Part shown: piece after piece, positions 11,756-54,209 of the stretch
How the letters are laid out: each line of letters opens with the position of its first letter
Numbering within the stretch: the stretch's first letter is position 1
Assembly (NCBI GenBank): GCA_038087875.1
Contig: JAXLNO010002965.1
Span: forward strand, 1-64,000
Origin: Malacoraja senta
Lineage: Eukaryota
DNA length: 64,000 bases
Direction: 5' to 3'
Translations under genes and position numbers: made by a program
The notes under the pieces: model-generated
What the model saw: only the letters and a program-made list of their open reading frames with translations
Databases searched by the model: none
What the model was told of the DNA's origin: nothing

Positions 11756-14304
11756 GCCTTGATCCTGCCCTCAAGTACTGTCCGTGTGGAGTTTGCACCT
11801 TCCCCCTGTGACTGCGCTGGCTACCTCCAGGTGGTCCAGCTTCCTCGTACACCACATGCTGGCTTGTTGCTTAATTGGCCTCCGTGAAGTCAAAATGTGA
11901 TGCATAAATGTGATAACTCTGAACTGGTGTGAACGGATGGTCAATGACTGGTGTGGATTCGCTGGGCTGAATGGACTGATATATATTTCAGCCCTCTAAA
12001 AAATAATCCCAAAACGTTATTTAAGGAATACAGGTTAATCCCAGAATCCTCATTGATATTTATCTTGCAGTTGATACCACCGAAGAACACAGATCATCTG
12101 TCGCTCATCACATTTCCCTTTGAATGAAAATTGAAAGCAGTGTTTGAGAGTGTCAGCTGTGAGGACAGGTTGGACAAACTTAGATCATTTGCTCTTGTGG
12201 AGTTGGAATATGAGGGGGGTGGGGGACACCTGATGGAAGTATATATAATTATGAGAGACACAGAGTAGAGAGGAGTAAATCTTAAATGATTTTTTACACA
12301 GAGAGTGGTGGGTGCTTGGAGCATGCTGTCAGAGGAAGTAGTGGAAACAGATATGATAGCAATGTTTAAAGGCATTTAAACAGGCATGTATGTGGTACTG
12401 CTCTATGTTTTATGTTAACTAATAAATTGATTTTGACTGTCGCGCCACACAGTGGCTCTTTTATTTTTTATTTTTATTATTATCTTGTTTATCTATTTAT
12501 ACTCTGTTTATGGGCCTGTTAGGCTGCTGCATGTAATAATGTAATTGTTCTGTTGTTGGAACATTTAATTAGACATTTCATTAAAGAAGCTTTCTCTTGT
12601 CTCTCTTGGGTCGTGACATGTGAACAGAGAGGAAATGAAGGGGTGTGTGGAAAGGAACAGCAGATGCCGGTTTAAACCAAAGGTAGACACAAAAATCTTG
12701 AGTAACTCAGCGGGAAAGGCAGCATCTCAGGAGAGAAGGACTGGGTGATGTTTTGGATCGATGCCCTTCTTCAGTCTGGATAGACAATGTGCAGGAAGAT
12801 GGGATTAGTTTGTAAAGGCAACATAGCCAGCACAGACGTTGTGATGCTAGGGCTTATCCCTGTGTGATCCTGCTCAATGTTCTCTGTTTATTCATTCAAT
12901 AGTGTTTACATTTCAAGAAATACTCAGTGGTTCTAAATGTTTTTAAAATGTTGTGAAAGGTTTTACAAGAATGAATCTATATATTTTACTTTTTTCTCCG
13001 TTTTTCATATTCTGATTTACATTGTAAAGAATCTCATTGTGTACGCACACAGAAACCAACCAAACAGTATCATACTTCAAGGCCAGAGTTTATGTTGCAC
13101 TTGAACCTGCAAACACCCTTGTTGGTATAACTTTATCAGTGTAACCATCTGTTGGCTTGTTAATTATTTGTTTATCGAAGCAGCTTGCTGTTAAATAAAG
13201 GTGATATATTTACCACAGCTTCTCACTATGTAGCAGATCTCCCCCCTTGTCAATCTTTTCCGAGAGTCTCCCTTCTTTATCTCTTTCCTTTGCTGCTACA
13301 TTTTCCTTGATCTCCATTCCCTTTGTCCTGTTTTCACATCTTACACGTCCTTATCTATACACTTCCTTATCTATCGACCTCCCATTCCCCTGACATCAGC
13401 CTGAAGAAGGGTCTCGACCCAAAATGTCACCCATTCCTTCTCTTCAGAAATGCTGCCTGTCCCGACGAGTTACTCCAGCATGTTGTGTCTATGTTCTGAT
13501 TGGATCTCTTGTTGTTTCCTTGCATTCTTATTTTGATTGTCATTAAAGTTGTTGGCGTTGCCTGTACTGGATCCCACCCCTGGCCCAAGACAAGCAACAA
13601 GACACAATGACATAAAAGTTAACATAAACATCCACCACGGCAGATTCCCACATTACTCACTGTGATGGAAGGCAAAAAAGTCCAATCTTCTTTCTTTTTA
13701 TTCTCCCGCGGTCGGGGCAGTTGAAGCACCTGTGTCAGGGCGATAGAAGCTCCTGTGTTGGGGTGGTCAAAGCACCTGCGGCTTGGAGCTCCCGAGGTCG
13801 GTCTCTGACCAGAGACCGCGAGCTCCGTGATGTTAAGTCCGCAAGCACCCACAGTTGGAGCTCCGAGGTCGATCCCTGGCAAAGAGATTGTGAGCTGCGT
13901 GATGGTAACTCCGCAGGCTCCCGTGGTGGAGCTGTCAAAAGTCGGCCTCCACCAAAGGACGGCAACTCCTGGATGTTAGGCTGCAGTGCGGACCGAGATA
14001 CGATACAGAAAAAAATCGCATCTCCATCGAGGTAAGATATTAGAAAAGGTTTCCCCCAACCCCACACCCCACCCCACGTAAAACAAGCTAAAGAACACTA
14101 AAAACATACATTTAACACATGGGTCAGCATCCTTGTTCTGCACAGGAGCCAGGACCCATGTCTGTGAGTGGATGGAGGGCCACATCTGTCACCATAGTTA
14201 ATAATTAATTCATTATAGTTTTAAAAAATCGTAACAAAAAGACAATTACCCCCGGGACAAATACGACTAAAGTGCAACACTGTGGCCGGAGCGGAATTGC
14301 TCAC

Positions 14305-14460
14305 CGACCTCGCTGATGCTTTGTTTTCCTCCAGCCCGTCCACCGCTGGGCTCCCGAAGAAACCGCTCCAGCACAGCGTTGTCGAAGTCGCTCTCATCCC
14401 GCTGCAGTTTCACACAAGCCGCAGCACCGAGGTGGGGGGGGGGCGCTTTCACTTCGGGAG
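14305..14460 (-). other. CpG-rich candidate first exon/promoter of an unidentified minus-strand transcript
   Basis: CpG-rich segment not recognisable as a repeat. Strong donor TCG|GTGAGC at 14304, ATG at 14397 giving a 31-codon phase-0 exon, and an IRF-like GAAGTGAAAGC at 14445-14455. No downstream exons identified. Confidence 0.35.
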
Positions 14461-14512
14461 GTCGGGAGGATGGAAGAGGGGGTGGAAGAGTAGGGACGGG
14501 GAGAAAGATTTA

Positions 14513-14828
14513 AGGGCCTGTCCCACTGTACGAGGTAATTCAAGAGCTCTCCCGAGTTTAAAAAAAATCAAACTCGTGGTAAGTACGTAGAATGTACGTA
14601 GCGGGTACGTCGGAGCTCGGGACGTCTCTTAGTGGCTCGTAATGCTAACGGCATGTACTCAGGAAACGCGGTAAGCTCGTGAAGACTCGTGAAGATTTTT
14701 AAACGTGTTGAAAAATGTCCACGAGAGCCCCGAGTACCTACGAGCGGCTATTACTGTAATTCTCCGAGTTCGAATCATGGGAAACTCGGGAGAACTCTTG
14801 AATTAGCTCGTACAGTGGGACAGGCCCT
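14513..14828. mobile_element. Second copy of the Harbinger-like MITE, inverted relative to 1403-1720
   Basis: TIR agggcctgtcccactgtacgag / ctcgtacagtgggacaggccct, flanks TTA/TGA. Confidence 0.75.
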
Positions 14829-19254: not shown

Positions 19255-19740
19255 AGAGCATAGAACAGTACAGCACAAGAACAGGCCCTTTGACCCACAA
19301 TGTTTGTGCCGAACATGATGCCAAGACCAATTGTTATCTGCTTGCACATAATCCATATCCATCCATTCCCTGCATATACATGTGCCTATCTAAAAGTCTC
19401 TTAAATGCCACTATCATATCTGCTTCCACCACCACCTCCAGCAGCACATTCCAGTCACTCACCACCCTTGGCGTAAAACACTTGTCCTGCACATCTTTTT
19501 TTAACTTTGCCACTCATTGTAAAGCAATACCTGCTCTTATTTGATATTTCCTTCCTGGGTAAAAAGTCTGATGGTCTACCCTATCTCTACTCCTCCCAGT
19601 TTGATATATTACTGTCAGGTCTCCCCTCAATCCCCGACATTCCAGAGAAAACAATCCAACTGTCCAGTCTGTCCAACTTCTCCCTGTGGCTAATACCCCA
19701 CTAATCCAGGCATCATTCTGGTAGACCTCCTCTGCATCCC
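19255..19740 (-). mobile_element. 5'-truncated CR1 inserted in the terminal exon of the MHC class I-like gene
   Basis: Minus strand reads gggatgcagaggaggtctaccagaatgatgcctggattag ... gggcctgttcttgtgctgtactgttctatg (CR1 ORF2 end and 3' UTR). Confidence 0.8.
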
Positions 19741-19933
19741 AAAGGAAGCTGATTGTGCTTCATGGTCCTCTCCTGGTCTCTGCTGTTGTCAGCTGGTACC
19801 TGTTCATTGAAAGGTTTTCTCTTTTTCCTCTTCTTCCAGCAACCAATTCCAAGGATGATCCCCAGGAGAATGAGAGGAACAATTACAGCTCCAGTCACGA
19901 TCCTAATCTTCATATCTTCTTTCACTGCCCTCT
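19713..19933 (-). CDS. MHC class I-like exon 5: connecting peptide, transmembrane helix and cytoplasmic tail
   Basis: Acceptor ccaacag|AG, phase 1. (E)RAVKEDMKIR-IVTGAVIVPLILLGIILGIGCW-KKRKKRKPFNEQ... is a 22-aa hydrophobic helix plus polybasic stop-transfer. The 3' end is uncertain (possible CAG|GTACCA donor). Confidence 0.8.
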
Positions 19934-20250
19934 CTGTTGGCATATACAGTGGCTTGCAAAAGTATTCATACCCCTTGAACTTTTCCACATTTTGTCACGT
20001 TACAACCACAAGCGTAAATGTATTTTATTGGGATTTTATGTGATAGACCAACATAAAGTGGCACATAATTGTGAAGTGGAAGGAAAATTATACATGGTTT
20101 TCAAATTTTTTTACAAATAAAAAACTGAAAAGTGTCGCGTGCGAAAATATTCAGCCCCCTTTACTCTGATACCCCTAAATAAAATCCAGTGCAACCAATT
20201 GCCTTCAGAAGTCACCTTATTAGTAAATAGAGTCCACTTGTGTGTAATCT

Positions 20251-20593
20251 CGGGACGACAGATGGCGCAATGGGCTAAGTGTTCGGCTGGCAACCGGAAG
20301 GTAGCCGGTTCGAATCCCGCTTGGAGTGCATACTGTCGTTGTGTCCTTGGGCAAGACACTTCACCCACCTTTGCCTGCGTGTGAATGTGTGTGAGTGATT
20401 GGTGGTGGTCGGAGGGGCCGTAGGCGCAGATTAGCAGCCACGCTTCCGTCAGTCTGCCCCAGGGCAGCTGTGGCTACAGAAGTAGCTCACCATCACCGAG
20501 TGTGACTGAGGAGTGAATGAATAATGCGATGTAAAGCGCCGAGTATTAGAAAGGCGCTATATAAATCCCATCCATTATTATTATTATTATTAT
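20251..20593 (+). mobile_element. tRNA-derived CORE-SINE (resembles teleost AFC-type SINEs) nested in the Tc1
   Basis: A and B boxes (tggcgcaatgg; ggttcgaatccc), CORE-like gtgtccttgggcaagacactt, L2-type tail ggcgctatataaat...(tta)n, TSD taatct at 20245-50 and 20594-99. Confidence 0.75.
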
Positions 20594-20674
20594 TAATCTA
20601 ATCTCAGTATAAATACAGCTGTTCTGTGAAGGCCTCAGAGGTTTGTTAGAGAACATTAGTGAACAAACAACATC

Positions 20675-21696
20675 ATGAAGCCAAAGGAACACACCAGACA
20701 GGTCAGGGATAAAGTTGTGGAGAAGTTTAAAACAGGGTTAGGTTATAAATAAATATCCCAAGCTTTGAACATCTCACGGAGCACTGTTCAATCCATCATC
20801 CGAAAATGGAAAGAGTATGGCACAACTGCAAACCTACCAAGACATGGCCGTCCACCTAAACTGACAGGCCGGGCAAGGAGAGCATTGATCAGAGAAGCAG
20901 CCAAGAGGCCCATGGTAACTCTGCAGGAGCTGCAGAGATCCACAGCTCAGGTGGGAGAATCTGTCCACAGGAAAACTATTAGTCGTGCACTCCACAAATC
21001 GGGCCTTTATGGAAGAGTGGCAAGAAGAAAGCCATTGTTGAAAAAAGCCCATAAGAAGTCCCGTTTGCAGTTTGCCACAAGCCATGTGGGGGACACAGCA
21101 AACATGTGGAGGAAGGTGCTCTGGTCAGATGAGACCAAAATTGAAGTTTTTGGCCTAAATGCAAAACGCTATGTGTGGCGGAAACCTAACACTGCACATC
21201 ACCCTGAACACACCATCCCCACTGTGAAACATGGTGGTGGCAGCATTATGCTGTGGGGATGCTTTTCTTCAGCAGGGACAGGGAAGCTGGTCAGAGTTGA
21301 TGGGGGAAGATGGATGGAGCCAAATACAGGGCAATCTTGGAAGAAAACCTGTTAGAGTCTGCAAAAGACTTGAGACCGGGGCGGAAGTTCACCTTCCAGC
21401 AGGACAACGACCCTAAACATACAGCCAGAGCTACAATGGAATGGTTTAGATCAAAGCGTATTCATGTGTTAGAATGGCCCAGTCAAAGTCCAGACCTAAA
21501 TCCAATTGAGAATCTCTGGCAAGACTTGAAAATTGCTGTTCACAGATGCTCTCCATCCAATCTGACTGAGCTTGAGCTATTTTGCAAAGAAGAATGGGCA
21601 AAAATTTCAGTCTCTAGATGTGCAAAGCTGGTAGAGATATACCCCAAAAGACTTGCAGCTGTAATTGCAGCGAAAGGTGGTTCTACAAAGTATTGA
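20675..21696 (+). pseudogene. Tc1 transposase with one nonsense codon and one frameshift
   Basis: MKPKEHTRQVRDK... with TAA at 20750-52; paired-like HTH; DD34E motifs [22 protein letters not shown]; frameshift near 21303 (extra G run). Confidence 0.93.
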
Positions 21697-23056
21697 CTCA
21701 GGGGGGCTGAATACTTTTGCACGCGACACTTTTCAGTTTTTTATTTGTAACAAAATTTGAAAACCATGTATCATTTTCCTTCCACTTCACAATTATGCAC
21801 CACTTTGTGTTGGTCTATCACATAAAATCCCAATAAAATACATTTACGTTTGTGGTTGTAACGTGACAAAATGTGGAAAAGTTCAAGGGGTATGAAAACT
21901 TTTGCAAGCCACTGTATAGTGCATTTTAAACATTTAGTGATCAATAACAACATTGTAATGATTTTATTATCTAAATTAAAGTAGCACTGTTCATATCTAA
22001 TTAAAAAGTAATAACGTTTTAGATTTAAGTATTTATACAGAGGATGGATGTGCTTAAAATGATCAATGAAAAATCATTAAGTTCATATTAGCATTGAGGT
22101 ATTGAGATTTTATCTGCAGCATTTAATTAAGAATTTAAAGAATCAAGTACGTCAGAAATATATGACTATTTACAGTGTAGAGGTCAACAAGGCCATTTTC
22201 TTATGTTGATTGTTATTATAGCAAATAAAAGTGAACCCATTTATAGTTGATAAAACTTCAAAGGTTTTAATCTTTGCTGATATTTCAATGATATCTGAGT
22301 TTAATTTTCTCACATACACATGCTCTCTCTTTCTCTCTCTCTCCCCCTCACTGTCTCACACACATGAGCCCACACACACACACATAGGCACACACAAACA
22401 TTAACACTACTGTCTATTTGTACTGACCAGCAATCTTAACCATGTCAGCTTGGCCCTGGTGTGAAGATCTTTGCAGAGGTCTTGTCTGGAACAAATAAGT
22501 CAGCTACAGAACAGGTGCTGCTACTTCAGCCTGATAATATGGCACCACTATTGGTCTTTTGTGTAACTAGCTACTATCAGAAAATTAGCTAGATGCCCAA
22601 GGAAGAAGATAAGAGACCTTGTCCAGGATCAGCCTATCTTGCTTCCACTGTTCCTACATTTGGATGGGTGAGTTAAGGGTGACATAAGAATAATTTTGAC
22701 CATAAGATATTGGAGCGGAATTATGCCTTTCAAGTCCATTGAGTCTACTCCACCATTCAGTCATAGCAGATCTATTTTTTACCGCTAAATCCCATTCTCT
22801 AGCCTTCTCCCTGTAACCTTTGTCACCCGTACTCATCAAGAACCTATCAATCTCTGCTTGAAAAATATGCAATGACTTGACCCACACAGCTGTTTGTATC
22901 AATGAATTCCACAGATTCACCACCCTGTGACTAAAGAGATTCCTCCTCATCTCCATATTGAAGGTAGGTATTTTTATTGTGAGGCTGTGCTAGACTCTCC
23001 CATTACTGAAAACTTCCTTTCCCATCAACTAACCAGGCATTTCATTATCTGGTAGG

Positions 23057-26000
23057 CAGGGCCGGATTTACATATAAGATGGACAAGCTTCAGTTTAGGG
23101 CCTGGAGATCTAGGAGGGGCTCGCAGAGCCGGATTTACCACTAGGCTTCATAGGCTGAAGCCTGGGGCCCTGAAATATAGGGGGCCTCCGGCCAAGGCAG
23201 GACACCAGCCGTTCAACTCTGGGCGGGGTGGCCCCCCTCTCTATCTCTATCTCCGTCTGTCACTCTCCGTGTCCGGGTCTCCGTTCTCCGCTCGCTCCTC
23301 ATCCGCCGGCACGGCCGGCCGCCTTGCACATGCACACTGCTACGGCCAGCACGTCCTCCCCTGCACATGCGCACAACCACAGCCCGCACGTCATCGGCCG
23401 CCCTGCGCATGCGCACTGCCACGGCAACTGGTCGGGGCTGGGCACTTTCTCCCTCGCTTTGAATTGTGGGAGATTTGGCCGCCATTGCTGCCTCGCCGCA
23501 ACCGCTGAAAACTAACACAGAATCACTCCCTGACCCTGGATCAGGAGTATCTCCCTGGAGTAACTCTCGCTTCTGGTTTCCTGATCCTCCATAAATATTC
23601 TAAAAGGAATTTAAACTGGAGGTGGTAGAGGGCTGAACAATAACAGCCTATTGCATTTTATCTGTTTATTTATTGTGTATATATATGGTCTATGGTATAT
23701 AAACACACTGAACTTTTATCTCTTGTTCTGTATTATGTTCACATATTATGTTGTGCTGCAGCAAGCAAGAATTTCATTGTCCTATCTGGGACACATGACA
23801 ATAAAACTCTCTTGACTCTTGACTTGGACTTAAGCAAAAAAGGGTTCTTGGGGAAAAAAGAGGTACCTTAAATTTAGTTGCGTCTGGTTGGGTAACTATG
23901 GTAGGGTGAAGACTATTCCATGCTTTAATTGTGCGGGGGAACTCCATGGAGCAGCCAGCAACTCAGGATAGAAGAAATTGGGTGACGTTTCGGGTAGAAA
24001 CACTTCTTTAGACTCCCTCTGGTTTTAGTGTCTTTAGCTTAATTTGAAGATACAGCGTGGAAACAGGCCCTTCAGCCCTCCGAGTCCACGCCGACTATTG
24101 ATCACCCGTACACTAGTTCTTTCCCACACATTAGCGAAGTAAGTCAAGAGTCAAGAGTTTATTCTCTCACGTCCCAGTTAGAACAATGAAATCCTTACTT
24201 GCAGCAGCACAACAGAATATGTAAACATAGTACTCTGTAAACAATGTTATAAACGAGAAAACAAAACGGTGTATATTTATAGCTGTGGTGGAGACAATCG
24301 CTGCTGCTACCCGACCCCCGGAGATTCGGAGGCTACAACCGCGGGTCTGGCGGACGGCAACACCGGAAGCCCGTGGGTCCCCTGGTGGGACACCGCTTTT
24401 CAGGGCATCCGCAGCGGCGACTTCTCCCGCCCGAGTTGCGGGGTTGAAGAGCACCTGGAGGGGAGCTTTACATCACCGCCCCGCGCGGCTTGGAATGGCC
24501 GCCGGACTTTGCGAGCGCGCGCCGGGGCTCTAACACCAAGACGCGGTGCGCGACCCTGCATTAACCGGCGTGGCTTTAATGGCCGCGGGATAATCACCAT
24601 CGCCCGCCGGGGGCTTTGACTTTGACTCTGACATCGGGGGGGTGGGGGGGGGGGGAGTGCAGTGGAGAGATACGTTTTTTTGCCTTCCATCACAGCGCTG
24701 TGATGGATGTATGTGTAAATTGTGTTGTGTCTCGGGTCTTCTTCGTTTTGTAATGTATGGCTGCAGAAACGACATTTCGTTTGGACCTCAACGGGGTCCA
24801 AATGACAAATTTGTCCAAAAGACAAATAAAATTGTATTGTAATTGTATTGTATATATATATATGTGTGTGTGTGTGTGTGCATAGTATATATACCCACAC
24901 GCACACACACACAATTTCCCTCCTGGGATTAATAAAGTTCTATCGTATAGTATCGTGTGTGTAGGAAGGAACTGCAAATGCTGGTTTAAATTGAAGATAG
25001 ACACACAAAGCTGGAGTAACTCAACAGGTCAGACAGAATCTCTGGACAAAAGGGAAATATTACGTTTAGGGTTGGTTCTGAAATAGGTTCCTGCACACCT
25101 TTGGAATGTGGAAGGAAACAAGAGCACCCGAAGAAAACCCATGCGATCAAAGTGAAAAGGAGCAAACTCCAAACAGACAACACCCATATTCAGGATCAAT
25201 TCCAGGTCTCTGGCACTTTTAGGCAGCAACCTTATGGCCAATGTACAGCCCCATTGTCTTGAACTTAATTAAAACGCCAAGTGTAGCATTTCCTGCAGTT
25301 GCAATGGAAAGTGCCAGGAGCGGGGGTGGTTTGGGTGGGAAGGGACGAATTGACCAGGGAGTTACGGAGGGAGCGGTCTCTATGGAAAGCCAACAGGGGA
25401 GGAGATGGGAAGATGTGGCCAGTTGTGGGATCCCATTGGTAGACAAAAAAGCTGTAGAAAATCAGCGGGTGAGGCAGCACCTGTGGAGCGAAGGAATAGA
25501 CGATGTTTCGGGTCGAGACCCTTCTTCAGATTGATGTCGGGGGGGGGGGGGGATGACATGAAAAATAAAGGAAGAGACGGAGACAGTAGGCTGTGGGAGA
25601 GCTGGGAATGGGAGGGGAAGGAGGGAGAAAGCAAGGACTACCTGAAATTAGAGAAGCCTATGTGCATAGCGCTGGGGTGTAAACTACCCAAGCAAATATG
25701 AGGTGCTGCCCCTCCAATATGCGGTGGGCCTCACTCTGGCCATGGAGGAGGCCCAGGACAGAAAGGTCAGATTCGGAATGGGAGGGGGCGTTGAAGTGCT
25801 GAGCCACCGGGAGATCAGGTTGGTTATTGCGAACTGAGTGGAGGTGTTGTGCGAAGCAATCGCCAAGCCTGCACTTGGTCTCACCGAGGTTGATCATACG
25901 CTGAATAATCCAACCACATTTTTTTTTGGAAGTGGAAAGAAATAATAGAAATTGCATTCATTGCAACGTGTAAAAAGAGTTAAGATACAGTATTATAATT

Positions 26001-26576
26001 GTGCTGCATGTCATTGTGGTATATCTCATGTCCTGATTGGTGAATATGTTTAGTTTGTGGCTTTATTTGAAGCAGAAATAATATGTGAATGCTTCATTGA
26101 GCATAATTCTGACTGGTCGTCCGAGCACATTATCGCACGTGTCATGCAAGCCATCTTAAATAACCACCTAAACTGTCATTTGGCAACTTAAAAAGCTACC
26201 AAGGTTGCTCGGCTGACAACAGAGAAAAAAAATTAAGTGAGAGCCCTGCAAGGTGTATAATATTTTTGACACTGTCATAGGCCTTTCTTACATATGCTGT
26301 CACAACGCACTGTAGTCTCTAAACAACACTTCAGTAATTTTCCTTGCCCTCCATTTCAGAATAATAGTGTTTTAAGCCAATAACTCGACACTAGCAGTGG
26401 CAATAAATAAATAAATAAAGCCCAGCTTTCCAGCCCCTTATCTCATTGGCCACGCTCGGCTGCAAATCGGTGTCAATCTGGTGGACCATCTTCCTCTGGT
26501 CGTGGGGTGGGGGACTGGGGGGGGGGGCTCACAAGTGGAACAGCTTAGGGCCTCTCTTCATCTAAATCCGGCCCTG
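23057..26576. mobile_element. Non-autonomous hAT element carrying nested SINE, PLE and LINE pieces, inserted in a CR1
   Basis: TIR cagggccggattta / taaatccggccctg; exact 8-bp TSD ctggtagg at 23049-56 and 26577-84. Confidence 0.85.
25265..25895 (-). mobile_element. Penelope-like element 3' fragment
   Basis: ORF 25658-25957 GETKCRLGDCFAQHLHSVRNNQPDLPVAQHF, homologous to 53-370, followed by the same terminal repeat. Confidence 0.85.
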
Positions 26577-27770
26577 CTGGTAGGTTTCAATGAGATTCCC
26601 ACCTCATCCTTCTAAATCCCATGAGCACAGGCACAGAGACTTCAAACACTCCTCATACGTTAAATCAATCATCCCCAGGACATACATCCTCTCGACCCTC
26701 TCCAAAGCCAGCACATCCTTTCTAATATGGAGCCCAAAACTGCTCACAATATTCCAAATGTGTCTTCACCAGTGCCCGATAAATCCTCAGCATTATATCA
26801 TTGTTTTTATATTCTACGCCCCCCGAAATGAATGCTGGCATTGCATTTGCCTTACTTACCACTGACTCAATCTGCAAATGAACTATTTGGGAATCCTGCA
26901 CTAGTACTCCCACTTTGTAGCTCAGGTTTCTCAATTCTCTCCCCATTTAGAAAATAGTCTATGTCTTTATTCCGACTGCCAAAATGTAAAACCAGACACT
27001 TGCTACACTGTATTCCATTTGGCTCTGCTTTGCCCACTAGGTGGAACTGCTGCCTTACAGCGCCAGAGACCCGGTTCAATTCTGACTACGGGTCCCGTCT
27101 GTACAGAGTTTTGTACCTTCTCCCCGGGACTTGCGTGGGTTTTGCCTGGATCTCCGGTTTCCTCACTCAGTCCAAAGACATACAGGTTTGTAGGTTAATT
27201 GGCTTGGTATAATTGTAAATTGTCCCCTAATAAGTAAGATAATGTAAGTGTGCAGGGATCGCTGGTTGACGCAGACTCGGTGGGCTGAAGGGCCGGTTTC
27301 TGCGCTGTATCTCTTAAACTAAAACCACATTCCATTGACTATCAATAATTATGAGCAATTAGATAACCACAAATTAATAATGGGTGGCACAGTGGCGTAG
27401 CGGTAGAGCTGCTGCCTTACTGCACCAGAGACCTGGGTTTGATCCTGACTACAGGTGCTGTCTGCAAGGACATTGTATGTTCTCCCTGTGACTGCGTGGG
27501 TTTCCTCCCACACTACAAAGACATACAGGTTTGTAGGTTACTTGGCTTAGGTAAAATTGTAAATTGTCCGTACTGTGTAGGTTAGTGTAAATGTATGGGT
27601 TGATCACTATTCAGCGAGGACTCAGTGAGCTGAGGGGCCTGTATCTGCAGCATATCTCTAAAGCCTAAAGTCTAAATCCACAGCTTAGTTAAGAGTGTGA
27701 GTTGAGACTGTTATCTCAGTCCAGGAGGTTTATGGTCTCAAGTGATCAGCCTCATTGACTTGCCACTTAC

Positions 27771-28043
27771 CCTGTGGAACATTGACTCCCTGCAGCAGAG
27801 TTGCATGTTCGATGTAACAGGAGAATTTTGCCACATCTTCTCTATTCAGTTGAATTGTATTCTTCAGCTGGTAAGTCCCATCCCAATTGGGCAACAGATC
27901 ACTGGATTCAGACTCATGGACCCCCTCACCATCTCTCAGCCACGTTACATCGATGGCCCGTGGCTAGAAGCCTGTGACAAGGCAGGAGAGTCTCAGTGAT
28001 TGCGACCCATCACGTTTAATCCCAATAAACACCTCAGGGGTTT
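27771..28043 (-). pseudogene. MHC class I-like exon 4 (alpha3, Ig C1 domain) with premature TAG
   Basis: cttgcag|AA...CAG G|GTAAGT. Reads ETPEVFIGIKRDGSQSLRLSCLVTGF*PRAIDVTWLRDG...LLPNWDGTYQ...FSCYIEH, with both Ig cysteines and the Trp present. Confidence 0.92.
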
Positions 28044-29247
28044 CTGCAAGTGTAAGAAGAGTCAGAATCAGTGAAGACATGAACAAAAGCCTTCAATTGT
28101 AAGATCACTGCAACTCACCACTTTCCCAATCAGAGTTTTTTCTCTGGCTGAACTAAGTTTTCAGCCTAGACCCAAAATGCTGGAATAACTCAGCAGGTCA
28201 GGCAGCATTCTGGAGAGAAGGAATGCCCAGAGATGCTATCTGACCCACTGAGTTACACCAACATCTTCTATCTTCAGTGTAAACCAGCATCTGCAGTTCT
28301 ATCTTGCACAAAGTTTACAGCCTTTTCTCTTTTCATTTTGCATTTCTGGCAAAACAACAAAACATTTAGCTTTAATATCACTGACATGCTCCTTATCTTT
28401 GCTCCAGACTTTAACTGACAGCACAGATGAAAGGGGAATGCAGGCCCAATGGAGGAGTATAACTCACCATTGGGATTGATACTGTAGACATGATTGCTTC
28501 TACCTGTTCATGAATCTCTGCTGAATAATAACACTAAATATTCCAAGAGGGAATGGGAGGAAGAAGTTCTTCAAATAGAGAACTGTTGGAAATTGAATGT
28601 CACCATCCCAAGGAGTAATAGAGGCAAATAGAGAATCTGATTGGGTTTCTGATCAGTTCAGCAACAGACCCTTCAGGCCACAAGGTCGGTGCTAAACATA
28701 AGACCAAGATACATATTCCTCCATTTCCTGAATATCTATATGACTGTGGATAAAGGACACTGGTACAATATTTATCTTTCACTTGCACTTCCTACCCACT
28801 GGTTCCATCTAAGAGGCACGTTGCCAGACAATTTACTGAGACCCACGTTGTAGAACAGGGTGGCGAAGCGGTGGAGCTACTGCCTTACAGCGCCAGAGAC
28901 CTGGGTTTGTTACTAACTACGGGTGCTTGTCTTTACAGAGTTTGTACGTTCTCCCTGTGACCTGCGTGGGTTTTATCCGAGATCTTCGGTTTCCCCTCAC
29001 ACTCGAAAGACGTACGAATTTGTAGGTTAATTGGATTGGTATAAATGCAAATTGTCCCTAGTGTGTGTAGGATAGTGTTAGTGTGCGGGCATGGCTGCTC
29101 GGTGCGGTGTCGGTGGGTTTCCGCGCTGTATCTCTAAATTAAACTAAATAATTACTCAAGTGACAGCCTGACGTGCATGATATTTCCCACCTGATCTATC
29201 CAGAGGATATCCTCTGGCCCATCAGTCAGAGTGCCTACGTCGTGTAC

Positions 29248-29523
29248 CTCTCCTCTGTAGTGCTTCTTGTCCACACTCCAGATATATCCGCAGCCACTTC
29301 ACACAGTCCTTCTCCAGGAGATCTTTAAAATACTTGTTCATGAAGGTGTTGACGTTCCACCGATCTGCTAGCATCTGGAAATCTGGACGTAGTGCAATCC
29401 AGCGCATTCTGTCCTTGTCAAAAGCACAGGCATCCTCCCCATCATAACCCAGTCTGACAAACCCATCAGTGAAATTGTCACTGTCCACTTCACAGCCGCA
29501 GAAACCCTGCACAAAGCAAACAG
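29248..29523 (-). CDS. MHC class I-like exon 3 (alpha2 domain)
   Basis: ccccag|CT...AGA G|GTACAC; 276 nt; QGFCGCEV...YDGED...RW...EKDCVKWLRIYLE (C101/C164 pair, YDG motif). Confidence 0.95.
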
Positions 29524-30539
29524 CTGGGGCTGAGGTAGGGGTGGAGGATTTGTGTTGGGGAGAGTGGATGGAAGGGAGAGGCAATTTACAAATCAGTTCT
29601 CAGCATGGTACAAACAGGCATAACAGAACACAACATGGAGCTGTACAGCACAGGAGCAGGTTTAGCTCAGAGATACAGCGCGGAAACAGGCCCTTCGGCC
29701 CACCGAGTCCGCACCGACCAGTGGTCCCCGCATATTAACACTATCCTACACAGACTACTTTTCTTTTCCAGCTTTCTCCACTCTACCCCATCACTCTAAA
29801 TGGTCCTGGTCTCATATGTTTTCTGTCCATTTTTCCACAGCATGCTGCCTGACTCGTTGAGTTCCTCCTGTTTGTTTTAAATTCAGATTGGCAGCATCTG
29901 CAGTTTGCTGTGACTCCATCTTAGCACAATGGATGATCAATGTGGATTCAGTGAGCAGAAGGGCCGGTTTCCATGCTGTGTGACTCAATGACCCTTGGTC
30001 TATATACTGAGGGCATGGACTAACCTCAAGTGTTATGGGGGGGAGCTTTACTGTTGCGGATGTAACACTAAAGGAGTTCTGCTGTGTCAGAAGGGTAGAA
30101 CTCAGATTCTGCACTGTCGTACATAAAGAACAGAGGAAGAAGTGCATTGTCAGATGGGCAATGTTATACAGTGAACAGGTCAGTCTCAAGGTTAAGGCAA
30201 TGCAGATGGGAAGTACATCAAGGCTGTTGCACTGTGTGGGATTGCTACACCCTCTGAGGATTGTTGCCAATATTGAGGGGATGCTGGATTAACACAATAT
30301 TATTACTGAGGGAATACCTCATAGTCACCATCAACCAGCTTAAATCAAGATCCCATCTCTAGATGATCAGGCTATAAATAAACTAATGGTTTCTCCCTCA
30401 TTCCAGCCCAACAAAACAGATGATCCAATCCATCCACTTATTACTGGTGTTGAATATCAAATGCTTAACCCATAAAGAGACTATCACCAGCCAACTGTTA
30501 TGACTGTGTGTTCAGCAGTTAGGACACATTAAATATAGA

Positions 30540-31210
30540 CGATGGGCCGTGTCTCTATCAAAATGTTATGGAGTAAATGTCTGAAACAGCATCAATGGTG
30601 CTGAAGTGAAAAAGGTTGAGAGTTTCTGGTTCCCCTACTGCCTCAGGAGACTAAGGAAATGCGGCATCTCCAATGACTCTTACAAACTTCTACAAATGTG
30701 CCATAGAAAGCATACTGACAGGTTGCATCACAACTTAGTTTGGAAAGAGTTCTGCCCAAGACCGCTGGAAATTGCAGAGAGGTGGAGATGTAGCACAGTC
30801 GATCACACAAACATGATTCCCCACCAGTGAATCCATCTGTATTTCAACTGGTTCAGGAAAGCAGACAACATAATCAAAGATTTGTCCCGTTCTGGTCACT
30901 CCTTCTTCCTGCAGAAGGTACGTAAGCATTAAAGCGTGCACCACCAGACTCAGTAACTGTTTCCTCCCCTATGTTATCAGGTTTCTGAACAGTCCTCCCT
31001 TATGCTAGGGTTCACCTCAACCCCATTGTAGACACTGGACTTTGTCTCTGGCACTGGTACATTACAATGCTGAGAACTACATTCTGCACTCTTTGCTCTA
31101 CCTATTGTACGAGTTTGGTTTGATTGTATTTATGAATAGTTTTCTTTGATGTGATTGACTAACGCAAAAAAAGTGTATCAGAGAATCATGTGTCAACAAT
31201 AAAACTAAAA
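30540..31210 (+). mobile_element. Decayed Rex1/Babar-type LINE 3' fragment in intron 2
   Basis: YCLRRLRKCGIS...KLLQMCHRKH resembles the LYFLRRLRKFG motif; HHIIKDLSRSGHSFF resembles the HPGHSLF motif. Confidence 0.65.
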
Positions 31211-31267
31211 CAAAATCCATCTGTGTCATCACTGAGTGTCTACCCCAGGTCCGCTCACGACACTTAC

Positions 31268-31528
31268 TCGAGATACCATGTTGCTGTTGGTAGACTATCT
31301 CAGCATTTCCTCTGACAATCCCATGAAAACCTGCAACTGTGATGGCCATTGAATCCCAGTGATCCTGCGGGAAAGACTGGGCCATCCATCGCTGTCTGGG
31401 AACAGCCCGCTCTAGTGTGCTGTCAAAATATGCTATCTGGACGTCATCCAGCATTGCTACCATACTGTACTCAGGCAGCTCATTCAATCCATGGTTCAAC
31501 AGGTAGTAAAATGCAAGATGGTGTAAAT
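31268..31528 (-). CDS. MHC class I-like exon 2 (alpha1 domain)
   Basis: ttgcag|AT...TCG A|GTAAGT; 261 nt; DLHHLAFYYLL...LPEYSMVAMLDDVQIAYFDS...PRQRWM...DHWD. Confidence 0.93.
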
Positions 31529-34500
31529 CTGCAATGCATAAACAAAAATAAGTATGATTGTATCATTCACTGAAAATAACTAAGTTATTAATGCTAAAAC
31601 TGATAACAATACAATAACTTTGAATAAGGGAGTCACAAGGACCTGCAGATGCAAGTGCTGGATGAACTCAGTGGGGCAGGCAGCATCAATGATCAGGTGA
31701 CAATTTGGGTCAGGAGCCTTTAGTTTAGTTTTTAGCTTAGAGATACAGCATGGAAACAGGCCCTTCGTGCGAGTCCACACTGACCAGCAACCCCCACACA
31801 ATAACACTATCCTACACACACTAGGGACAATTTACATTCTAGACCAAGCCAATTAACCTACAAACCTATACGTCTTTGGAATGTGGGAAGAATCCGAACA
31901 TCTCGGGACAAACCCACACGGTAATGGGGAGAATGGACAAACTCCGTACAGACAGCATCCGTAATCAGGATCCAACCTGGGTCTATGGTGCTGTAATCGA
32001 GTAAGTCTACCGCTGCACCACTGAGCCTTCTTCAAGAGTTGGCATGATGGGCTCTGATACCTACTCCACCAATTATGGTCGAGGTATTGAATGATCCTAC
32101 TGGATTGTTTCCCATCTTCAAAGATCTATTATTGTCTATCATGTCGATAGGTTCTACTAGTTACAATATTCCAAAGTTTGAAGAATATTTTATTATATTA
32201 AGAAACTGGACAATGTCAAGGAGACTTTATAGAATCATAGAGAGGTAAAGTCAAAGAGTCATACAGCAGGGAATCAGGGCCTATGGCTCAACTTGCCACA
32301 CCAACCAACATGCCTCATCTACACTGCCTGTATTTCATCAGTACATAAGTTCTAGGAGAATAATTAGGCCATTCAGCCCATCGGCCATTCAATCATGGCT
32401 GAGCTATCTCTCCCTATCAACCACATTCTCCTGCCTGCACCCCATAACCCTTGAAACCCATACTGATCAAGAATCTGTTAATCTCCACCTGAGAAATATC
32501 CATTGATGTGGGCTCTACAGCTGACTGAGGCCCATATCCTTATAAGCCTATCCTATCCATGTACCTGATTAAATGATTCTTAAATGTCGTGATAGTACGT
32601 GCCTGAACTACCTTCTCCGGCAGTTCATTCAGTACACCCACCACCCTTTGTGTAACAATGCTATGCCTCAGGTTCCTATTAAATCATTCCCCCCTCATCT
32701 TAAACTTATGTCCACTGGGTACAGCACATAAAAGGCCCTTTAGCCCACCAAGTTCGTGGTGACCATCAAACACCTATTTATACCTGTGGTACGCTAACCC
32801 TTTTAATATTTGCCAATCTCCCATTAACACCTCCCTCATCCCCTCCACCAATTCTAATACATATGCATGACCAATTCACACTGGCCAATTTACCTTTCAG
32901 CCCGGCATTTTGGGGACGTGCGGGGAAACTGGAATAACCATAGCAAACACACGTTTGCAGGTGGAAAAAAAAGCCAGGTTGTAAGAGATCAGGATTGAGT
33001 CCAGGTCCTCATAGGCAGCTGCAACACAGCTCATAGAGATGGGGGGGGGGGGGGTGGTGGAGACTGAGATAAACAGGGCCTAAATTGAAACTCGACACAA
33101 AATACTGGAGTAACTCAGTGGGTCAGGCAGCATCTCCGGAGAAAAGGAAAAGGTGACGTTTCGTGTCGAGACCCTTCTTCAGAATGAGAGTCAGGGGACA
33201 GAGAACCGAGAGATATGACAAAGTACAATGAAATATATGCACCCCCGACTCTGTCTGATGCAGTGTCTTGACCTGAAACTCCACCTATTCCTTTTCTCCA
33301 GCGATGCTGCCTGACTTGCTGAGTTACTCCAGCCTTTTGTATCTATCTTCGGTGTAAACCAGCATCTGCATCAGCAGTCAGAAGAAGGGTCTCGACCCGA
33401 AACGTCACCCATACCTTCTCTCTAGGGATGCTGCCTGTGCCGCTGAGTTACTCCAGCTTTATTGTCTATCTTCGGTTTAAATCAGCTTCTGCAGTTCCTT
33501 CTTACACATCTGCACTTCCTTCCTACACTTGTGTCAACTGAAACATCACCTAACCATGTTCTCCAGACATACTGCCTGACCTGCTGAATTACTCCAGTAT
33601 TTTATGTGTATTAACCAGCATGTGCAGTTTCTTGTTTCCACATGCATAAGCAGTATTTGTTCTGTGATAAAGATTACATGCAGCACACCAGACAGTGTCA
33701 AAGTTCATGTGTTTAAGTGAAGTGAGAAGGGGCCCCGAGGGCAGAGTTAGAAGTGTCTGTTTCAGTGTTACCAGGAGAAACATAAGACGGCTAAGAGTGG
33801 AATACAGTAACGATAAAATCCATGTGGCTTCCCAAAACACTCCACAGCCAAGGATTTTTGTTTTATATGTTATTATTTCAACATGGCCATCACCATTATA
33901 TGGTTTCGGCCCGAAACGTTGCCTATTTCCTTCGCTCCATAGATGCTGCTGCACCCGCTGAGTTTCTCCAGCATTTTTGTGTACCTTCGATTTTCCAGCA
34001 TCTGCAGTTCCTTCTTTAACACCATTATATTTACTTTCATTTGATAACAATGGGATGAAACTTTCAGGACGAGTAGGTTTGTAATCTCCAAGCCTTGACG
34101 AATGTCAGAATAGTTAGAAAGGTACCATTGTGTGGGAAGAAATTGCTCATCAGATTCCCATTCAATCTTTCCCCCCTCAATTTAAACCTATGTCCTCTGG
34201 TTCTCGATTCTGTAATCTGTTGAATATGTTGCCCACTTGAAAATTTCCAGATTGAGATTGATAGATTTTTGTTCATTAAGGGTGTAATGGGCTGGAGTTC
34301 GACCACAATGTCTGTGCCGAACATGATGTCAAGTTCAACTAAACTCTTCATGCTTGTAGATGATTCATATCCCTCAATTCCCTGCATATCTACGTGCCTA
34401 TCCTCAAGCTTCTTAAATCTCATTATCGTCTTCTGGGGAAGTGGTGATGGGGTAATGGATAGGGTCTGCAGGACAGGAAGCATGCAACAAACAACAAGAT

Positions 34501-35127
34501 GGCAACAACATTAACACAACATTGATTGGTCATTTAATGCAGGCTGAATTTTACCATCATGTGGGTGTCTAACACCAGCTGAGGAAATCTTGGAGAGGTG
34601 GAACACCTACTAATGCAGAAGTCACTTCTTTATTGAAAGTGCACATCACCTGAATTCTGTCTGAGGCATTAGTGCAAGGACAGATTGGACAAACATGGAT
34701 TGTTTTCTCTTGTATACTGGAGGTTGAAGGGAGACCTGATGAAAGTGCACAACATGGTGAGAGGCACAGACAGAGTGGACAGCCAGAACCTTTTTCCCAG
34801 GGTGGAAATGTTGAAGACCAGAGAACATCACTTTAAGGTTGGAGAAGCAATGTTCAAAGGAGATGAGCGGAGCAAGTTGTTTTATGTGGAGGGTGGTGGA
34901 CATCTGTAACGCGCTGCCAGTGGTGGTTGTGGTGATGGTGGCAGATATAACAGTTACATTTCAGAGGCTTTTAGATAGGTACATAGATAGGCAGGGAATG
35001 GCCGGATACAGATCACATACAGGTAGAGGAGATTAGTTTAGTTTGTTCGGCACAGACATTGTGGGCCGAAGGTAGACAAAATGCTGAGGTAACAGCGGGT
35101 CAGGCAGCATCTCTGGAGAAAAGGAAC

Positions 35128-35162
35128 GGGTGACGTTTCGGGTCGAGACCCTTCTTCAGACT
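35128..35162 (-). ncRNA. Minimal type-I hammerhead ribozyme motif in a Penelope terminal repeat
   Basis: Minus strand gt-CTGAAGA-a-GGGTC-tc-GACCC-GAAAC-GTC-ac: intact CUGANGA/GAAA core, 5-bp stem II, palindromic ACGT helix III, GUC cleavage triplet. Confidence 0.6.
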
Positions 35163-35462
35163 GAAGGACTGAAGGACCTGCTCCTGTGCTGTATTGTACT
35201 ATGTTCTATGTTCATTATTTACATGTATTCAGTTCTTCTGTTCAATGGATTGCCAAGGTAACCATAGTATATATAACTTCCCACAGGAGCCTTTACAACT
35301 AAGGAAAGACCGTTACCCAAAATTATTAATACATTCAATTCAATCATTCAATTAATACATCCAAGACAATGAACCCAGGGCAAACACAGGCACTGTGCAA
35401 CAGTAAATATAATCAGTTTTGTTGTTTCCTCAAAGTTCACAGGTTGAAGCAGTATTGCTTAC

Positions 35463-35514
35463 CAGAGGAGACAGTGGCCACACCGTAAGTGTTCAGTAAG
35501 GTAAAAAGAAGCAT
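35463..35514 (-). CDS. MHC class I-like exon 1 (signal peptide)
   Basis: aacATG CTT CTT TTT...TCC TCT G|GTAAGC; MLLFTLLNTYGVATVSS, phase 1, joins alpha1 as G|AT (Asp). Confidence 0.8.
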
Positions 35515-35696: not shown

Positions 35697-38600
35697 AATA
35701 CAGTTTACGGATTGGGTTTTATGGTAGGGATTATATTGGTGTTTTAAGGACAACAATTACAAAATCATATTTCACATAGCATCTTACAGCCGAATAGATG
35801 TTTCTCAAAGTATAATGATTTTACAATTCAGAATGCAGTCAATTCCACAAACTGCAGTGTTAGATAAACCAGATAGTCTACTTTACTGTGTAGGAAGGAA
35901 CTGCAGATGCTTGTTTTACTGTAGGCAGATGCAAAAAGCTGGAGTAACTCAGCGGGTCAGGCAGCATTTCTGGGGGAAAGGAATAGGTGACATTTCGGGA
36001 AGGGTCTCAACACAAATCGTCACCTTTTCCTTTTTCCCAGAAGTGCTGCCTGACCTGCTGAGTTACTCCATCTTTTTATAAGCATAGAAAATAGGTGCAT
36101 GAGGAGGCCCTTCGGCCCTTCGAGCCAGCACTGCCATTCATGGTGATCATGGCTGATCGTCCCCAATCAATGCCTGCCTTCTCCCCGTATCCCTTGATTC
36201 CACCAGCCTCTAGAGCTCTATCTAACATTTTTGTGTCTGTCTTTAGTCCACTTTACTGTTATTGCTTAAGTAATAAAAATTGGACAATGCATGTGTAATA
36301 ATTTCCCAGCCCTTATTTGAGGTAATACCATGCGTCTTTTTTTTCAGCTGGGAGGAGAGACATGAGCTCAGTTTAAAGTTGTGTCTAGGTGTAAATGTGC
36401 AGCTCAGTCTCAACATCAGTGCAGAAATCTCTCATTGAGCCTTCTGTTAATACATGGCCCTTTACACCATGTCCCACTCACCTGAAAACTATGCTCTCCA
36501 TTACTTTATATTTACACCCTGTGGAAAAGATTCTGACTCTCTATCCCATCTATGCCTCTCATAGTTTTATATACTTTTATCAACCTCCAGCATTCTAGCG
36601 ATTACAATCTAAGTCTGTCCAACCTCTCCTTCCAGCTAATATCTAATCTGTGCATCATTCTGGCAAACCACCTCTGCACAAATTCCATGCTTCCAAATTC
36701 ATCCTGCATTGGGGCAACCAGAAATGCCGATAATATTCTAAAAGTGGCCTATCTGAAGTTCTATTCTCCGACCAGTCTGACTGTCCCCCTGATTAAAAAT
36801 TATCTATGTATGCTTCTTTCACACCTACTCCTGGCTAATAATGATCTATTCTACATTTTCCTTGAACTACATCTCATTTGATGTCATTCTTTCATACCTT
36901 ACACTTCCTTATCTCCATGTCTCCCTTTCCTCTTCAGCCTGAAGGGACTCAACCAGAAATGTCAGCCATTCCTTCTATCCAGAGATGCTGCCTGTCCCAC
37001 TGAGTTACTCCAGCATTTTGTGTCTATCTTTGAAGTTCCATAAAGCAGCATATGACTTCCTGACTCTTATACTCAATGCTATGAATAGTGTCTTTACCAC
37101 TCTGGCTTTCAATTGATTGAAGGCGGAAAGGAGCCAAAGAATTATATAGCAAAAAATCTCTGTGGTGGGACTGGAACAGAATGTTTTTTTTTAAAGCAAA
37201 AAAATCAAGGATATTGTTCAATAAAAAAGTAAAATATTTCTTTTCCCGGTATGGCGGGACTAACATTTGATGAAAGAATGGACTGACTGGGCTTATATTC
37301 ACTGGAATTTAGGATGAGATGGGATCTTATAGACGCATATCAAATTCTTAAGGGATTGGACAGTTAGATGCAGGAAAAATGTTCCCGATATTGGGGGGAG
37401 TCCAGAACCAGGAGTCACAGTTTACGAGTAAAGGGTAGGCCATTTAGGAATGAGATGAAGAAAAACGCTTTCACCCAGGTAGTTGTGAATCTGTGGAATT
37501 CTCTGCCACAGAAGGCAGTGGAGGCCAATTCACTCGATGTCTTCAAGAGAGAGTTAGATCTTAGGGCTACAGAATCAAGGGATATGGGGAGAAAGCAGGA
37601 ACAGGGTATTGATTCTGGATGCTCAGCCATGATCATATTGAATGACGGTGCTGGCTTGAAGGCCATAATTTTCTACTCCTGCACCTGCTTTCTCTGTTTC
37701 TATATTGCTGCAGATGGATTGTTAAACGTCCATTCTTTTAAAAGTTCTGCCCCAGTGACTAAAATGCAACAGGTTGTTCATGCCGAGGAATTTGAAGTTC
37801 TTCACCATTCCCACTTCAGCACTCGCACTTCTACAGTATTGATTCTGACTTCAATGTTTCAATGATTCTTTATTGTCACTTATGCACTGCACAGTGAAAT
37901 TCTTGCTCCCGTCGCCGTAATTTGGCAGTATTTACAAAAGAAAAAGAAAAAGTCCAATGTCCGGTCCGTATGTTGGATTTACTGGAGCGCCCCCGATCCA
38001 CGTAAGCTCAGTTAAACCCCAGGCTATTGCCAGGGGGGCCTCCTCCGTCACCCTCGACCAGCTCGGCCAGCCAACAGACGTCCCTCTCCTCGCCCAACTG
38101 GCTCTGTGTCCCGGGAGGCAACTCCTCTCCTGGAGGTAATACCTCAGTCCCTCTCTTAGCGGCCCATTCCTTGCGTCCGTCGGCGGCAGCGGCTCCCTCC
38201 TCCACGACTCTCCGGGTTTCGGGGCCAAGCTCAGCAGCTTCCACCGGGTTGCTCTTCACACCGGCGAACCAAACCTGCCGCCACATATGGCTGCAGGCGA
38301 CCGGCCGAGTCCATCTTCGTTCTCGGCGGCCGCCTGGTCGATTCGTGTTGGGTTCCGTGGGGCGATCCGTGGTCATTTGCTTCTGCCGCTGCGGTGCATC
38401 CCAGAAGCTTATGGCTTGTACACCATCTTCCTTCCAGCAGTCGATAACTAGCTCCTTCAAATTCACCTTGCTGACATTGAGGGAGAGATTGGAGATTCTG
38501 CAATAGAATAGTGAACATATTTAGGGGTGGCACAATGGCGCAGCGGTGGAGCTGCTGTCTTACAGCGCCAGAGACCCGGGTTCGATCCTGACAACGGGTG

Positions 38601-48512: not shown

Positions 48513-49873
48513 GCCGCAAGGCTCGATGTTGGGGCCGCAATTGTTTACCATATATATTAATGATTTGGAAGAGGGAATTAGGAGCAACACTAGCAAGTTT
48601 GCGGATGACACATAGCTGGGTGGCAGTGTGAACTGTGAAGAGGATGTTAGGAGGTTGCAGGGTGACCTGGACAGGTTGAGTGAGTGGGCAGATGCGTGGC
48701 AGATGCAGTATAATATAGATAAATGTGCGGTTATCCACTTTGACAGCAAAAACAAGGGGGCAGATTATTATCTCAATGGGGTTAGGTTAGGTAAGGGGGA
48801 GCTGCAGCGAGACCTGGGCGTCCTTGTACACCGGTCACTGAAAGTTGGCTTACAGGTACAACAGGCAGTGAAGAAAACTAATGTAATGTTGGCCTTCATA
48901 ACAAGAGGATTGCAGTATAGGAGTAGAGAGGTTCTTCTGCAGTTGTATAGGGCTCTGGTAAGACCACATCTGGAGTATTGTGTACAGTTTTGTTCTCCTA
49001 ATTTGAGGAAGGACATCCTTGTGATTGAGGCAGTGCAGCGTAGGTTCAAGAGATTGATCCCTGGGATGGCGGGTTGTCATATGAGGAAAGATTGAAAAGA
49101 CTAGGCTTGTATTCACTAGAGTTTAGAAGGATGAGGGGGAATCTTATAGAAACATATAAAATTATAAAAGGACTGGACAAGCAAGATGCAGGAAAAATAT
49201 TCCCAATGTTGGGCGAGTCCAGAAACAGGGGCCACAGTCTTAGAATAAAGGGGAGGTCATTTAAGACTGAGGTGAGAAAAACGTTTTCACCCAGAGAGTT
49301 GTGAATTTATGGAATTCCCTGCCACAGAGGGCAGTGGAGGCCAAGTCACTAGATTGATTTAAGAGAGAGTTAGATAGAGCTCTAGGGGCTAGTGGAGTCA
49401 AGGGATATGGGGAGAAGCCAGGCACGGGTTATTGATAGGGGACATGATCACAATGAATGGCGGTGCTGGCTCGAAGGACCGAATGGCCTCCTCCTGTACC
49501 TATTTTTGATGTTTCTATGTTTCTAACATTAGCAAATTTGCAGATGACACAAAGATGGGTGGCAGTGTGAACTGTGAGGAGGATTTTATGAGAATGCAGG
49601 GTGACTTAGACAGGTTGGGGGAGTGGGCAGATGCATGGCAGATTAAGTTTAATGCGGATAAATGTGAGGTTACCCACTTTGGTAGCAAAAACAGGAAAGC
49701 AGATTATTATCTAAATGGCGTCAAGTTGGGAAAAGGAAGTACAACCGGATCTGGGGGTCCTTGTACATCAGTCTATGAAAGTATGCATGCAGGTACAGCA
49801 GGCAGTGAAGAAAGCGAATGGCATGTTGACCTTTATAACAAGAGGAATCGAATATAGGAGCAAAGAGGTCCTC

Positions 49874-54207: not shown

Positions 54208-54209
54208 AG

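Follow-up and report, generated by a model that had tools for sequence, protein, structure and literature searches.

A skate class I gene of an unnamed MHC-Ib lineage, the tandem sister of UGA, probably inactivated in Malacoraja senta

Two non-classical class I molecules of the elasmobranch major histocompatibility complex (MHC), UFA and UGA, bind lipids like CD1d according to a review that cites a personal communication (PMC12562908). Only secondary mentions of the two were found in the literature, and no primary paper on them. UGA is represented in the PDB by entry 9CH4, whose title reads 'shark nonclassical MHC class I, UGA'. In the published map of the sawfish MHC, a further gene, LOC127585976, is tabulated as 'MHC-Ib' (Verissimo et al. 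2023, supplementary file 1; PMC10751288). Here we analyze a class I gene carried by a 64,000-nucleotide stretch of DNA from the skate Malacoraja senta (contig JAXLNO010002965.1 of assembly GCA_038087875.1, positions 1 to 64,000; hereafter, the window). Our results make it likely that an old and as yet unnamed MHC-Ib lineage of elasmobranchs, the tandem sister of UGA and a presumed presenter of hydrophobic ligands, has its skate ortholog in this gene, and that the copy at hand was inactivated recently.

The gene is the only class I gene in the window. It lies on the minus strand, running from an ATG at 35514 to a stop codon at 19713, and consists of five exons with canonical splice sites; there is one domain per exon, and all the internal exon junctions are in phase 1.

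35463–35514, minus strand: leader exon, with the ATG at 35514, coding for MLLFTLLNTYGVATVSS and ending at a GT donor in phase 1; 95% conserved in the Leucoraja locus of XP_055486430
31268–31528, minus strand: alpha1 exon, 261 nt, with the lineage motif ITVAGFHGIVRGN, F7 and H59, lacking the N86 sequon
29248–29523, minus strand: alpha2 exon, 276 nt, with C101, C164 and a lineage-invariant extra Cys99, as well as L143, R146, W147, L159 and Y171
27771–28043, minus strand: alpha3 (immunoglobulin (Ig) C1-set) exon, 273 nt, phase 1-1, with both Ig cysteines and a DGTYQ motif
19713–19933, minus strand: last exon, which codes for the connecting peptide, the transmembrane segment and the cytoplasmic tail and ends in the stop codon (19713–19715)

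The gene model of XP_055486430 reads the same last exon to its stop. When the window exons were searched against Pfam, MHC_I was recognized in alpha1 (1.4e-5) and alpha2 (2e-16) and C1-set in alpha3 (6.9e-9), the latter match being to the piece of alpha3 downstream of an in-frame stop. At the level of domain profiles these matches are far beyond chance. Together with the C101–C164 pair, the alpha3 Ig disulfide cysteines and the phase-1 exons, they are the features of the MHC class I superfamily. An earlier reading of the DNA, made from the sequence only, had described a complete leader/alpha1/alpha2/alpha3/transmembrane structure. All five exons are indeed present, but the frame is broken by a TAG at 27964–27966 in alpha3.

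A full-library search with the alpha1 exon, whose best sequence match in the PDB is 9ch4_A (2.4e-22), returned one close match, XP_055486430 of the little skate Leucoraja erinacea, at 95% identity and with its alpha3 G-F-Y-P motif intact. The locus of this protein and the window run collinear across introns and flanks at 88–93% nucleotide identity, indicating that the window is the orthologous locus of another skate species; the two proteins are 90% identical. A second little skate copy (P0182; Leucoraja JAMYXN010000412.1:53058-77289) comprises alpha2 and alpha3 only, with 84–90% identity to the window; its annotation is that of a 263-aa protein containing non-homologous filler. We rejected it as the ortholog of the window gene, because it is a partial duplicate, less similar to the window than the XP_055486430 locus.

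With XP_055486430 as the query, 11 further species of sharks and rays yielded relatives at 54–72% identity, the matches after these being at 33–36%, and additional members of the lineage appeared in cluster look-ups. As type members we took XP_051899694 (sawfish) and XP_055486430 (little skate). At the sawfish ortholog locus, an extra alpha3-like fragment (28618–28752 of the extracted locus, 60% identity to residues 297–339) lies between alpha3 and the last exon. In the sevengill shark, Heptranchias perlo, 11 near-identical lineage products occur on at least 7 contigs; they represent either multiple copies or haplotigs, so that the term 'single copy' cannot safely be applied to every species.

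In a maximum likelihood tree of 40 sequences, the window gene and 12 orthologs (13 rows) form a clade with 100/100 support, within which batoids and sharks split as in the species tree. This clade is sister, with 99/90 support, to the UGA clade containing the relatives of 9CH4; an 8GM8-type sequence and chimaera sequences fall outside the two. The ectodomain of the little skate protein, as modelled with AlphaFold (pLDDT 84.8), matches class I structures with a probability of 1.00, and its best structure match is again 9CH4 (TM 0.79/0.85, 37% identity). On phylogenetic grounds the window gene is thus a member of UGA's sister lineage, not UGA itself: its clade is not nested within the UGA clade, the Stegostoma member of the lineage reaches only 214 bits in a comparison with 9CH4, and genomes carrying the lineage also have a distinct UGA-type gene. 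Consequently, given the sister-clade topology and the distinct UGA-type gene that adjoins, identification as a UGA ortholog was rejected. The 8GM8-type identity was also discarded, since that sequence falls outside in the tree, and so was orthology to MR1, since Ala takes the place of Lys43.

In many genome annotations the lineage goes by 'MR1-like', a misleading automatic name. Among solved structures, the best sequence match of alpha2 is mammalian MR1 (4e-16), ahead of UGA 9CH4 (5e-13), which, along with a shared D-H-W, probably explains such names. No published name, function or study of the UGA-sister lineage was found in the literature. To that extent the sequence-only reading, which had suggested an uncharacterised lineage, was right; the lineage is, on the other hand, already catalogued as MHC-Ib in the published map (PMC10751288).

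The sawfish ortholog, XP_051899694, is the product of LOC127585976 (NC_067438.1:13956125-13977896), which is located between BRD2/B2M (13.03–13.09 Mb) and COL11A2/RXRB/HSD17B8 (15.1–15.6 Mb) (PMC10751288). A UGA-type gene on the same strand follows downstream of the lineage gene, at a distance of 42 kb in sawfish and 28 kb in zebra shark. As for skates, window bases 1–1400 match sequence flanking the UGA-type gene of Amblyraja on its upstream side, bases 1955–2813 do so for the UGA-type gene of Rhinoraja, and in little skate the lineage gene and the UGA-type gene are on one contig. These flank matches and the shared contig point to the same gene order in skates as in sawfish and zebra shark. 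The lineage thus has a characteristic position within the MHC-Ib cluster, where it immediately precedes a UGA-type gene of the same orientation. The order of the pair in both sharks and rays marks it as an old tandem duplication, older than the shark/ray split.

A translocation outside the MHC, which had been proposed for this gene, is not borne out, since the sawfish MHC map and the adjoining UGA-type gene place the lineage in the MHC. The earlier reading had named nesting inside a described lineage at its known MHC-linked location as the outcome that would speak against it; this applies in full to the location, which is MHC-linked, and in part to the lineage, which is catalogued but unnamed.

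Two lesions were found in the window copy:

27964–27966, minus strand: in-frame TAG in place of the codon for Tyr in the G-F-Y-P motif of alpha3 (G-F-stop-P)
19947–21914, strand not assigned: Tc1-like DNA transposon of about 1.97 kb, with terminal inverted repeats starting CAGTGGCTTGCAAAAGT, a TA duplication and transposase open reading frames (ORFs) at 20765–21696

The codon at the position of the TAG is TAC in the little skate ortholog, and Tyr is found in all relatives. The intact reading frame that characterizes the lineage is thus missing from this copy. Genomic contigs of two DNA runs from the same species (X1 and X2) carry the window sequence, the TAG included, and one X2 contig spans the TAG uninterrupted, with zero differences and at full single-copy depth; no alternative letter at this site is among the differences shown for X1 or X2. 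The runs that contain the gene cover introns and exons evenly, meaning that they are genomic runs. The Tc1-like transposon sits in the last intron, 11–13 nt ahead of the last exon's acceptor, and is absent from the Leucoraja locus, as judged from the collinearity gap and the junction sequences. At such a short distance from the acceptor, the insertion replaces the original polypyrimidine and branch region.

Apart from these lesions the coding sequence is well kept, suggesting that the damage is recent. Divergence from little skate is 3.4–5.1% in exons and about 7–12% in introns, the ratio of nonsynonymous to synonymous substitution (dN/dS) over the coding sequence is 0.47 (dS 0.072), and only three changes at otherwise conserved sites are specific to the window. 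Because both the TAG and the transposon are absent from the little skate ortholog and occur in an otherwise conserved coding sequence, the window copy is most likely a recently inactivated pseudogene or a null allele; the lesions themselves were observed directly, and the loss of function would follow from them.

For residue numbering, the window gene was aligned to a classical-type shark sequence retaining all anchors. The residues listed in the sequence-only reading stood up to this alignment, namely F7, H59, Q84, A123, L143, R146, W147, L159 and Y171, the missing N86 sequon, the floor residues V114 and L116, and the beta2-microglobulin (beta2m) contact motifs Q96, D119-G120-E121-D122 and P-N-W-D-G-T-Y-Q; the helix stretch SMAITVAGFHGIV that it had singled out is likewise present in the window alpha1. 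The classical peptide-terminus anchors (Y7, Y59, Y/R84, T143, K146, W147, Y159, Y171) are reduced to W147 and Y171, two out of eight, the other six being replaced by F7, H59, Q84, L143, R146 and L159. This is not the anchor set of a classical peptide-presenting molecule, and it supports the earlier assignment of the gene to non-classical class I.

Groove composition was compared at 45 groove-lining positions mapped by alignment. The hydrophobic fraction was 0.62–0.71 in the lineage, with 0.64–0.67 as a narrower range and 0.64 in the window gene, as against 0.47–0.58 in UGA-type, 8GM8-type and classical-type sequences and in a large F10-like group, so that the groove, noticed as hydrophobic in the sequence-only reading, turns out to be more so than in any of the other class I groups. 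Charged residues occupy 2 of the 45 positions in the lineage, versus 4–7 in the comparison sequences (two UGA-type, one classical-type). Among the lineage sequences of the groove alignment, 25 of the 45 positions are invariant, and in the lineage alignment the conservation of groove columns is slightly higher than that of the remainder of alpha1–alpha2 (0.87 vs 0.81). On the floor, Cys99 (in G-F/I/M-C-G-C) has no conserved partner and does not vary among the lineage members from the 16 species of sharks and rays examined; the same position holds Phe in UGA-type genes and Tyr in classical genes. Batoid members carry further cysteines at about positions 124 and 174. The cytoplasmic tail of the window gene contains no tyrosine sorting motif, and no conserved motif of this kind was found in the tail alignment of the lineage members.

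Among described molecules, UGA (9CH4) is the closest. In addition to being sister clades, UGA and the lineage are tandem neighbours of the same orientation in sawfish and zebra shark, the skates being consistent with this; they have in common the alpha1 helix motif I/F-T-x-A/T-G-F-H-G-h-h-K/R-G as well as the loss of T143 and Y159, and UGA is the best match of the lineage by both sequence and structure. However, identity between the two is only 37–42%. UGA keeps Y7, Y59, K146 and the N86 sequon and has F99, whereas the lineage has F7, H59 and R146, no sequon and an invariant C99. Aromatic groove residues number 11–12 in the lineage and 18–19 in UGA, and charged ones 2 and 4–7, respectively.

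The 8GM8-type shark class I, which we take to be probably UFA (the name was not read from the entry), is also a non-classical elasmobranch molecule with a related alpha1 domain (E 2.6e-12), and it groups with UGA and the window lineage with weaker support (93/69). Its representative in our set, P0021, ends in a short hydrophobic stretch without a cytoplasmic tail, whereas the window lineage has both a transmembrane segment and a tail. Classical elasmobranch class I (UAA; PDB 6LUP) has the same exon structure, fold, disulfides and beta2m-contact motifs, but its identity to the window gene is 29–33%, and of its anchors the window gene keeps only W147 and Y171.

CD1, whose deep hydrophobic pockets accommodate the tails of lipids, resembles the lineage in having a hydrophobic groove devoid of peptide anchors and in being apparently conserved rather than polymorphic, and it may serve as a working analogy for function. 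In sequence, on the other hand, the lineage is far closer to UGA, MR1 and classical class I than to CD1 (2.4e-29 for CD1c, compared to 2.9e-62 for 9CH4), and the lineage gene differs from CD1 in being MHC-linked and in lacking the tyrosine sorting motif, which most CD1 isoforms have as an endosomal YxxZ. With MR1 the lineage shares D-H-W (His being at the equivalent of position 59), and both are conserved and non-polymorphic in type. However, the position of Lys43, the residue with which MR1 captures its ligand, is occupied by Ala in the window gene, as seen against the K43A chain 4lcw; this makes an MR1-type chemistry unlikely, and tree and synteny place the window gene with shark UGA.

In the species where the gene is intact, it probably encodes a class I-like molecule that is anchored in the membrane and associated with beta2m. 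The groove of such a molecule would be very hydrophobic, almost uncharged and strongly conserved, with the peptide-terminus anchors lost. Most likely the molecule would hold a single conserved ligand, hydrophobic or lipid-like, and display it to lymphocytes, in the way reported for UGA and CD1; one ligand of this type is favoured by the combination of a hydrophobic, low-charge, conserved groove with the lipid binding reported for UGA. A bolder version, which we regard as unlikely, would make the lineage a third monomorphic presenter of non-peptide ligands beside UFA and UGA, with a ligand possibly tethered via Cys99, and this skate a natural knockout.

Several considerations weigh against our interpretation of the locus. 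The type of ligand is deduced from residue composition and from lipid binding that is attributed, by personal communication, to a sister molecule. The mapping of groove positions relies on alignment and is slightly uncertain at positions 150–156. Runs X1 and X2 may include the assembly's own sample, and contigs lose rare variants, so that an intact allele might be segregating in the species. The effect of the Tc1 transposon on splicing is presumed from the place of insertion. The dN/dS of 0.47 derives from a small number of changes and would be compatible with constraint or with early relaxation. Finally, no RNA run containing the gene was found.

The groove might be interpreted differently, with the lineage encoding a peptide binder, or else, like other MHC-Ib molecules, a receptor ligand that carries nothing, and with the hydrophobic residues merely packing a narrow or closed groove. 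Such an explanation, which we consider possible if rather unlikely, would be in line with the absence of an endosomal tyrosine motif from the tail and with the matches of lineage member P0175, which is nearer to MR1 and classical chains than to CD1 (4e-52 to 1e-39 against MR1 chains, 2.4e-29 against CD1c). A peptide binder, though, would hardly be expected to have lost six of the eight classical anchors, the 25 invariant groove positions point to one conserved ligand, and the sister lineage UGA is reported to bind lipids (PMC12562908, personal communication).

The state of the gene in M. senta can also be questioned. The TAG, and perhaps the Tc1 insertion, might belong to a null allele or to a haplotype specific to this assembly, an intact allele or a second intact copy persisting in the species, which would then not have lost the lineage. 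Variant contigs do exist in run X2 within the alpha2 exon (e.g., 29354 G>A, at about 40% of depth), and the coding sequence apart from the TAG is nearly undamaged. Still, this seems distinctly unlikely to us, as the X2 contig crosses the TAG unbroken at full single-copy depth, neither run lists an alternative letter there, and the window has just one class I gene. Very improbable is that the gene still works through an isoform skipping alpha3. The length (273 nt) and phase (1-1) of this exon are such that skipping would remove the TAG and yield an in-frame alpha1–alpha2–transmembrane protein, and both alpha1 and alpha2 remain well conserved (dN/dS 0.37–0.51). In mammals, the MR1B isoform lacks alpha3 and resembles the protein so envisaged. 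Nevertheless, the possibility of skipping alpha3 in frame is a generic property of class I genes and no evidence of use; the main contacts with beta2m and co-receptor would be missing from the resulting protein; this isoform, too, would be affected by the Tc1 insertion near the acceptor of the last exon; and no RNA run containing the gene was found in which it could be seen. We therefore keep to the view that the window copy is a recently inactivated pseudogene or null allele of the UGA-sister lineage.

Irrespective of the fate of this copy, the class I gene that had looked like an orphan is neither an orphan nor outside the MHC, being UGA's tandem sister within the MHC-Ib cluster of elasmobranchs, most likely dead here. 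The gene is real, belongs to a known kind and is found here disabled, and as a copy it is ordinary. The lead, a modest one, is at the level of the lineage, which is conserved in 16 shark and ray species and combines the most hydrophobic and least charged groove among the groups compared with a free Cys on the groove floor. The intact orthologs are reasonable targets for studies of early non-peptide antigen presentation, to which the broken skate copy adds little.

The sequence-only reading had also placed a SUN gene head-to-head with the class I gene. This could not be confirmed, as the upstream ORFs gave no SUN match. Pfam searches on ten upstream plus-strand ORFs returned no relevant match, tblastn/tblastx of the upstream region against elasmobranch loci found repeats only, and a repeat-masked ORF survey of 35.6–64 kb showed hAT-like and long interspersed nuclear element (LINE) reverse transcriptase remnants and nothing SUN-like; 'SUN' is also absent from the MHC gene tables of PMC10751288. 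What had been called SUN may correspond to two plus-strand, exon-like ORFs (55066–55223 and 57843–58055) that have a canonical acceptor and GTAAG/GTACA donors and encode helical, coiled-coil-like peptides. Neither had a family match in Pfam or among PDB sequences, the ESM Atlas gave only weak, unrelated matches, and they are not repeats in the elasmobranch loci compared.

About half of the sequence between 35.6 and 64 kb has further copies, either within the window or at other elasmobranch loci. On the minus strand, 43823–45370 contains long ORFs whose signature (C-E-R-T-F-S-x-L-K) is that of the C-terminus of a hAT-type transposase; they lie in an AT-rich block (GC content 0.31–0.33 at 44–48 kb). 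LINE reverse-transcriptase fragments were found at 42632–43445, 48361–50483 and 53668–54252. GC-rich stretches that are dense in ORFs on both strands, with no family match, occur at 13600–14600 and 37900–38600 and may be CpG-island-like or promoter sequences; the latter lies 2.5–3 kb upstream of the class I start codon.

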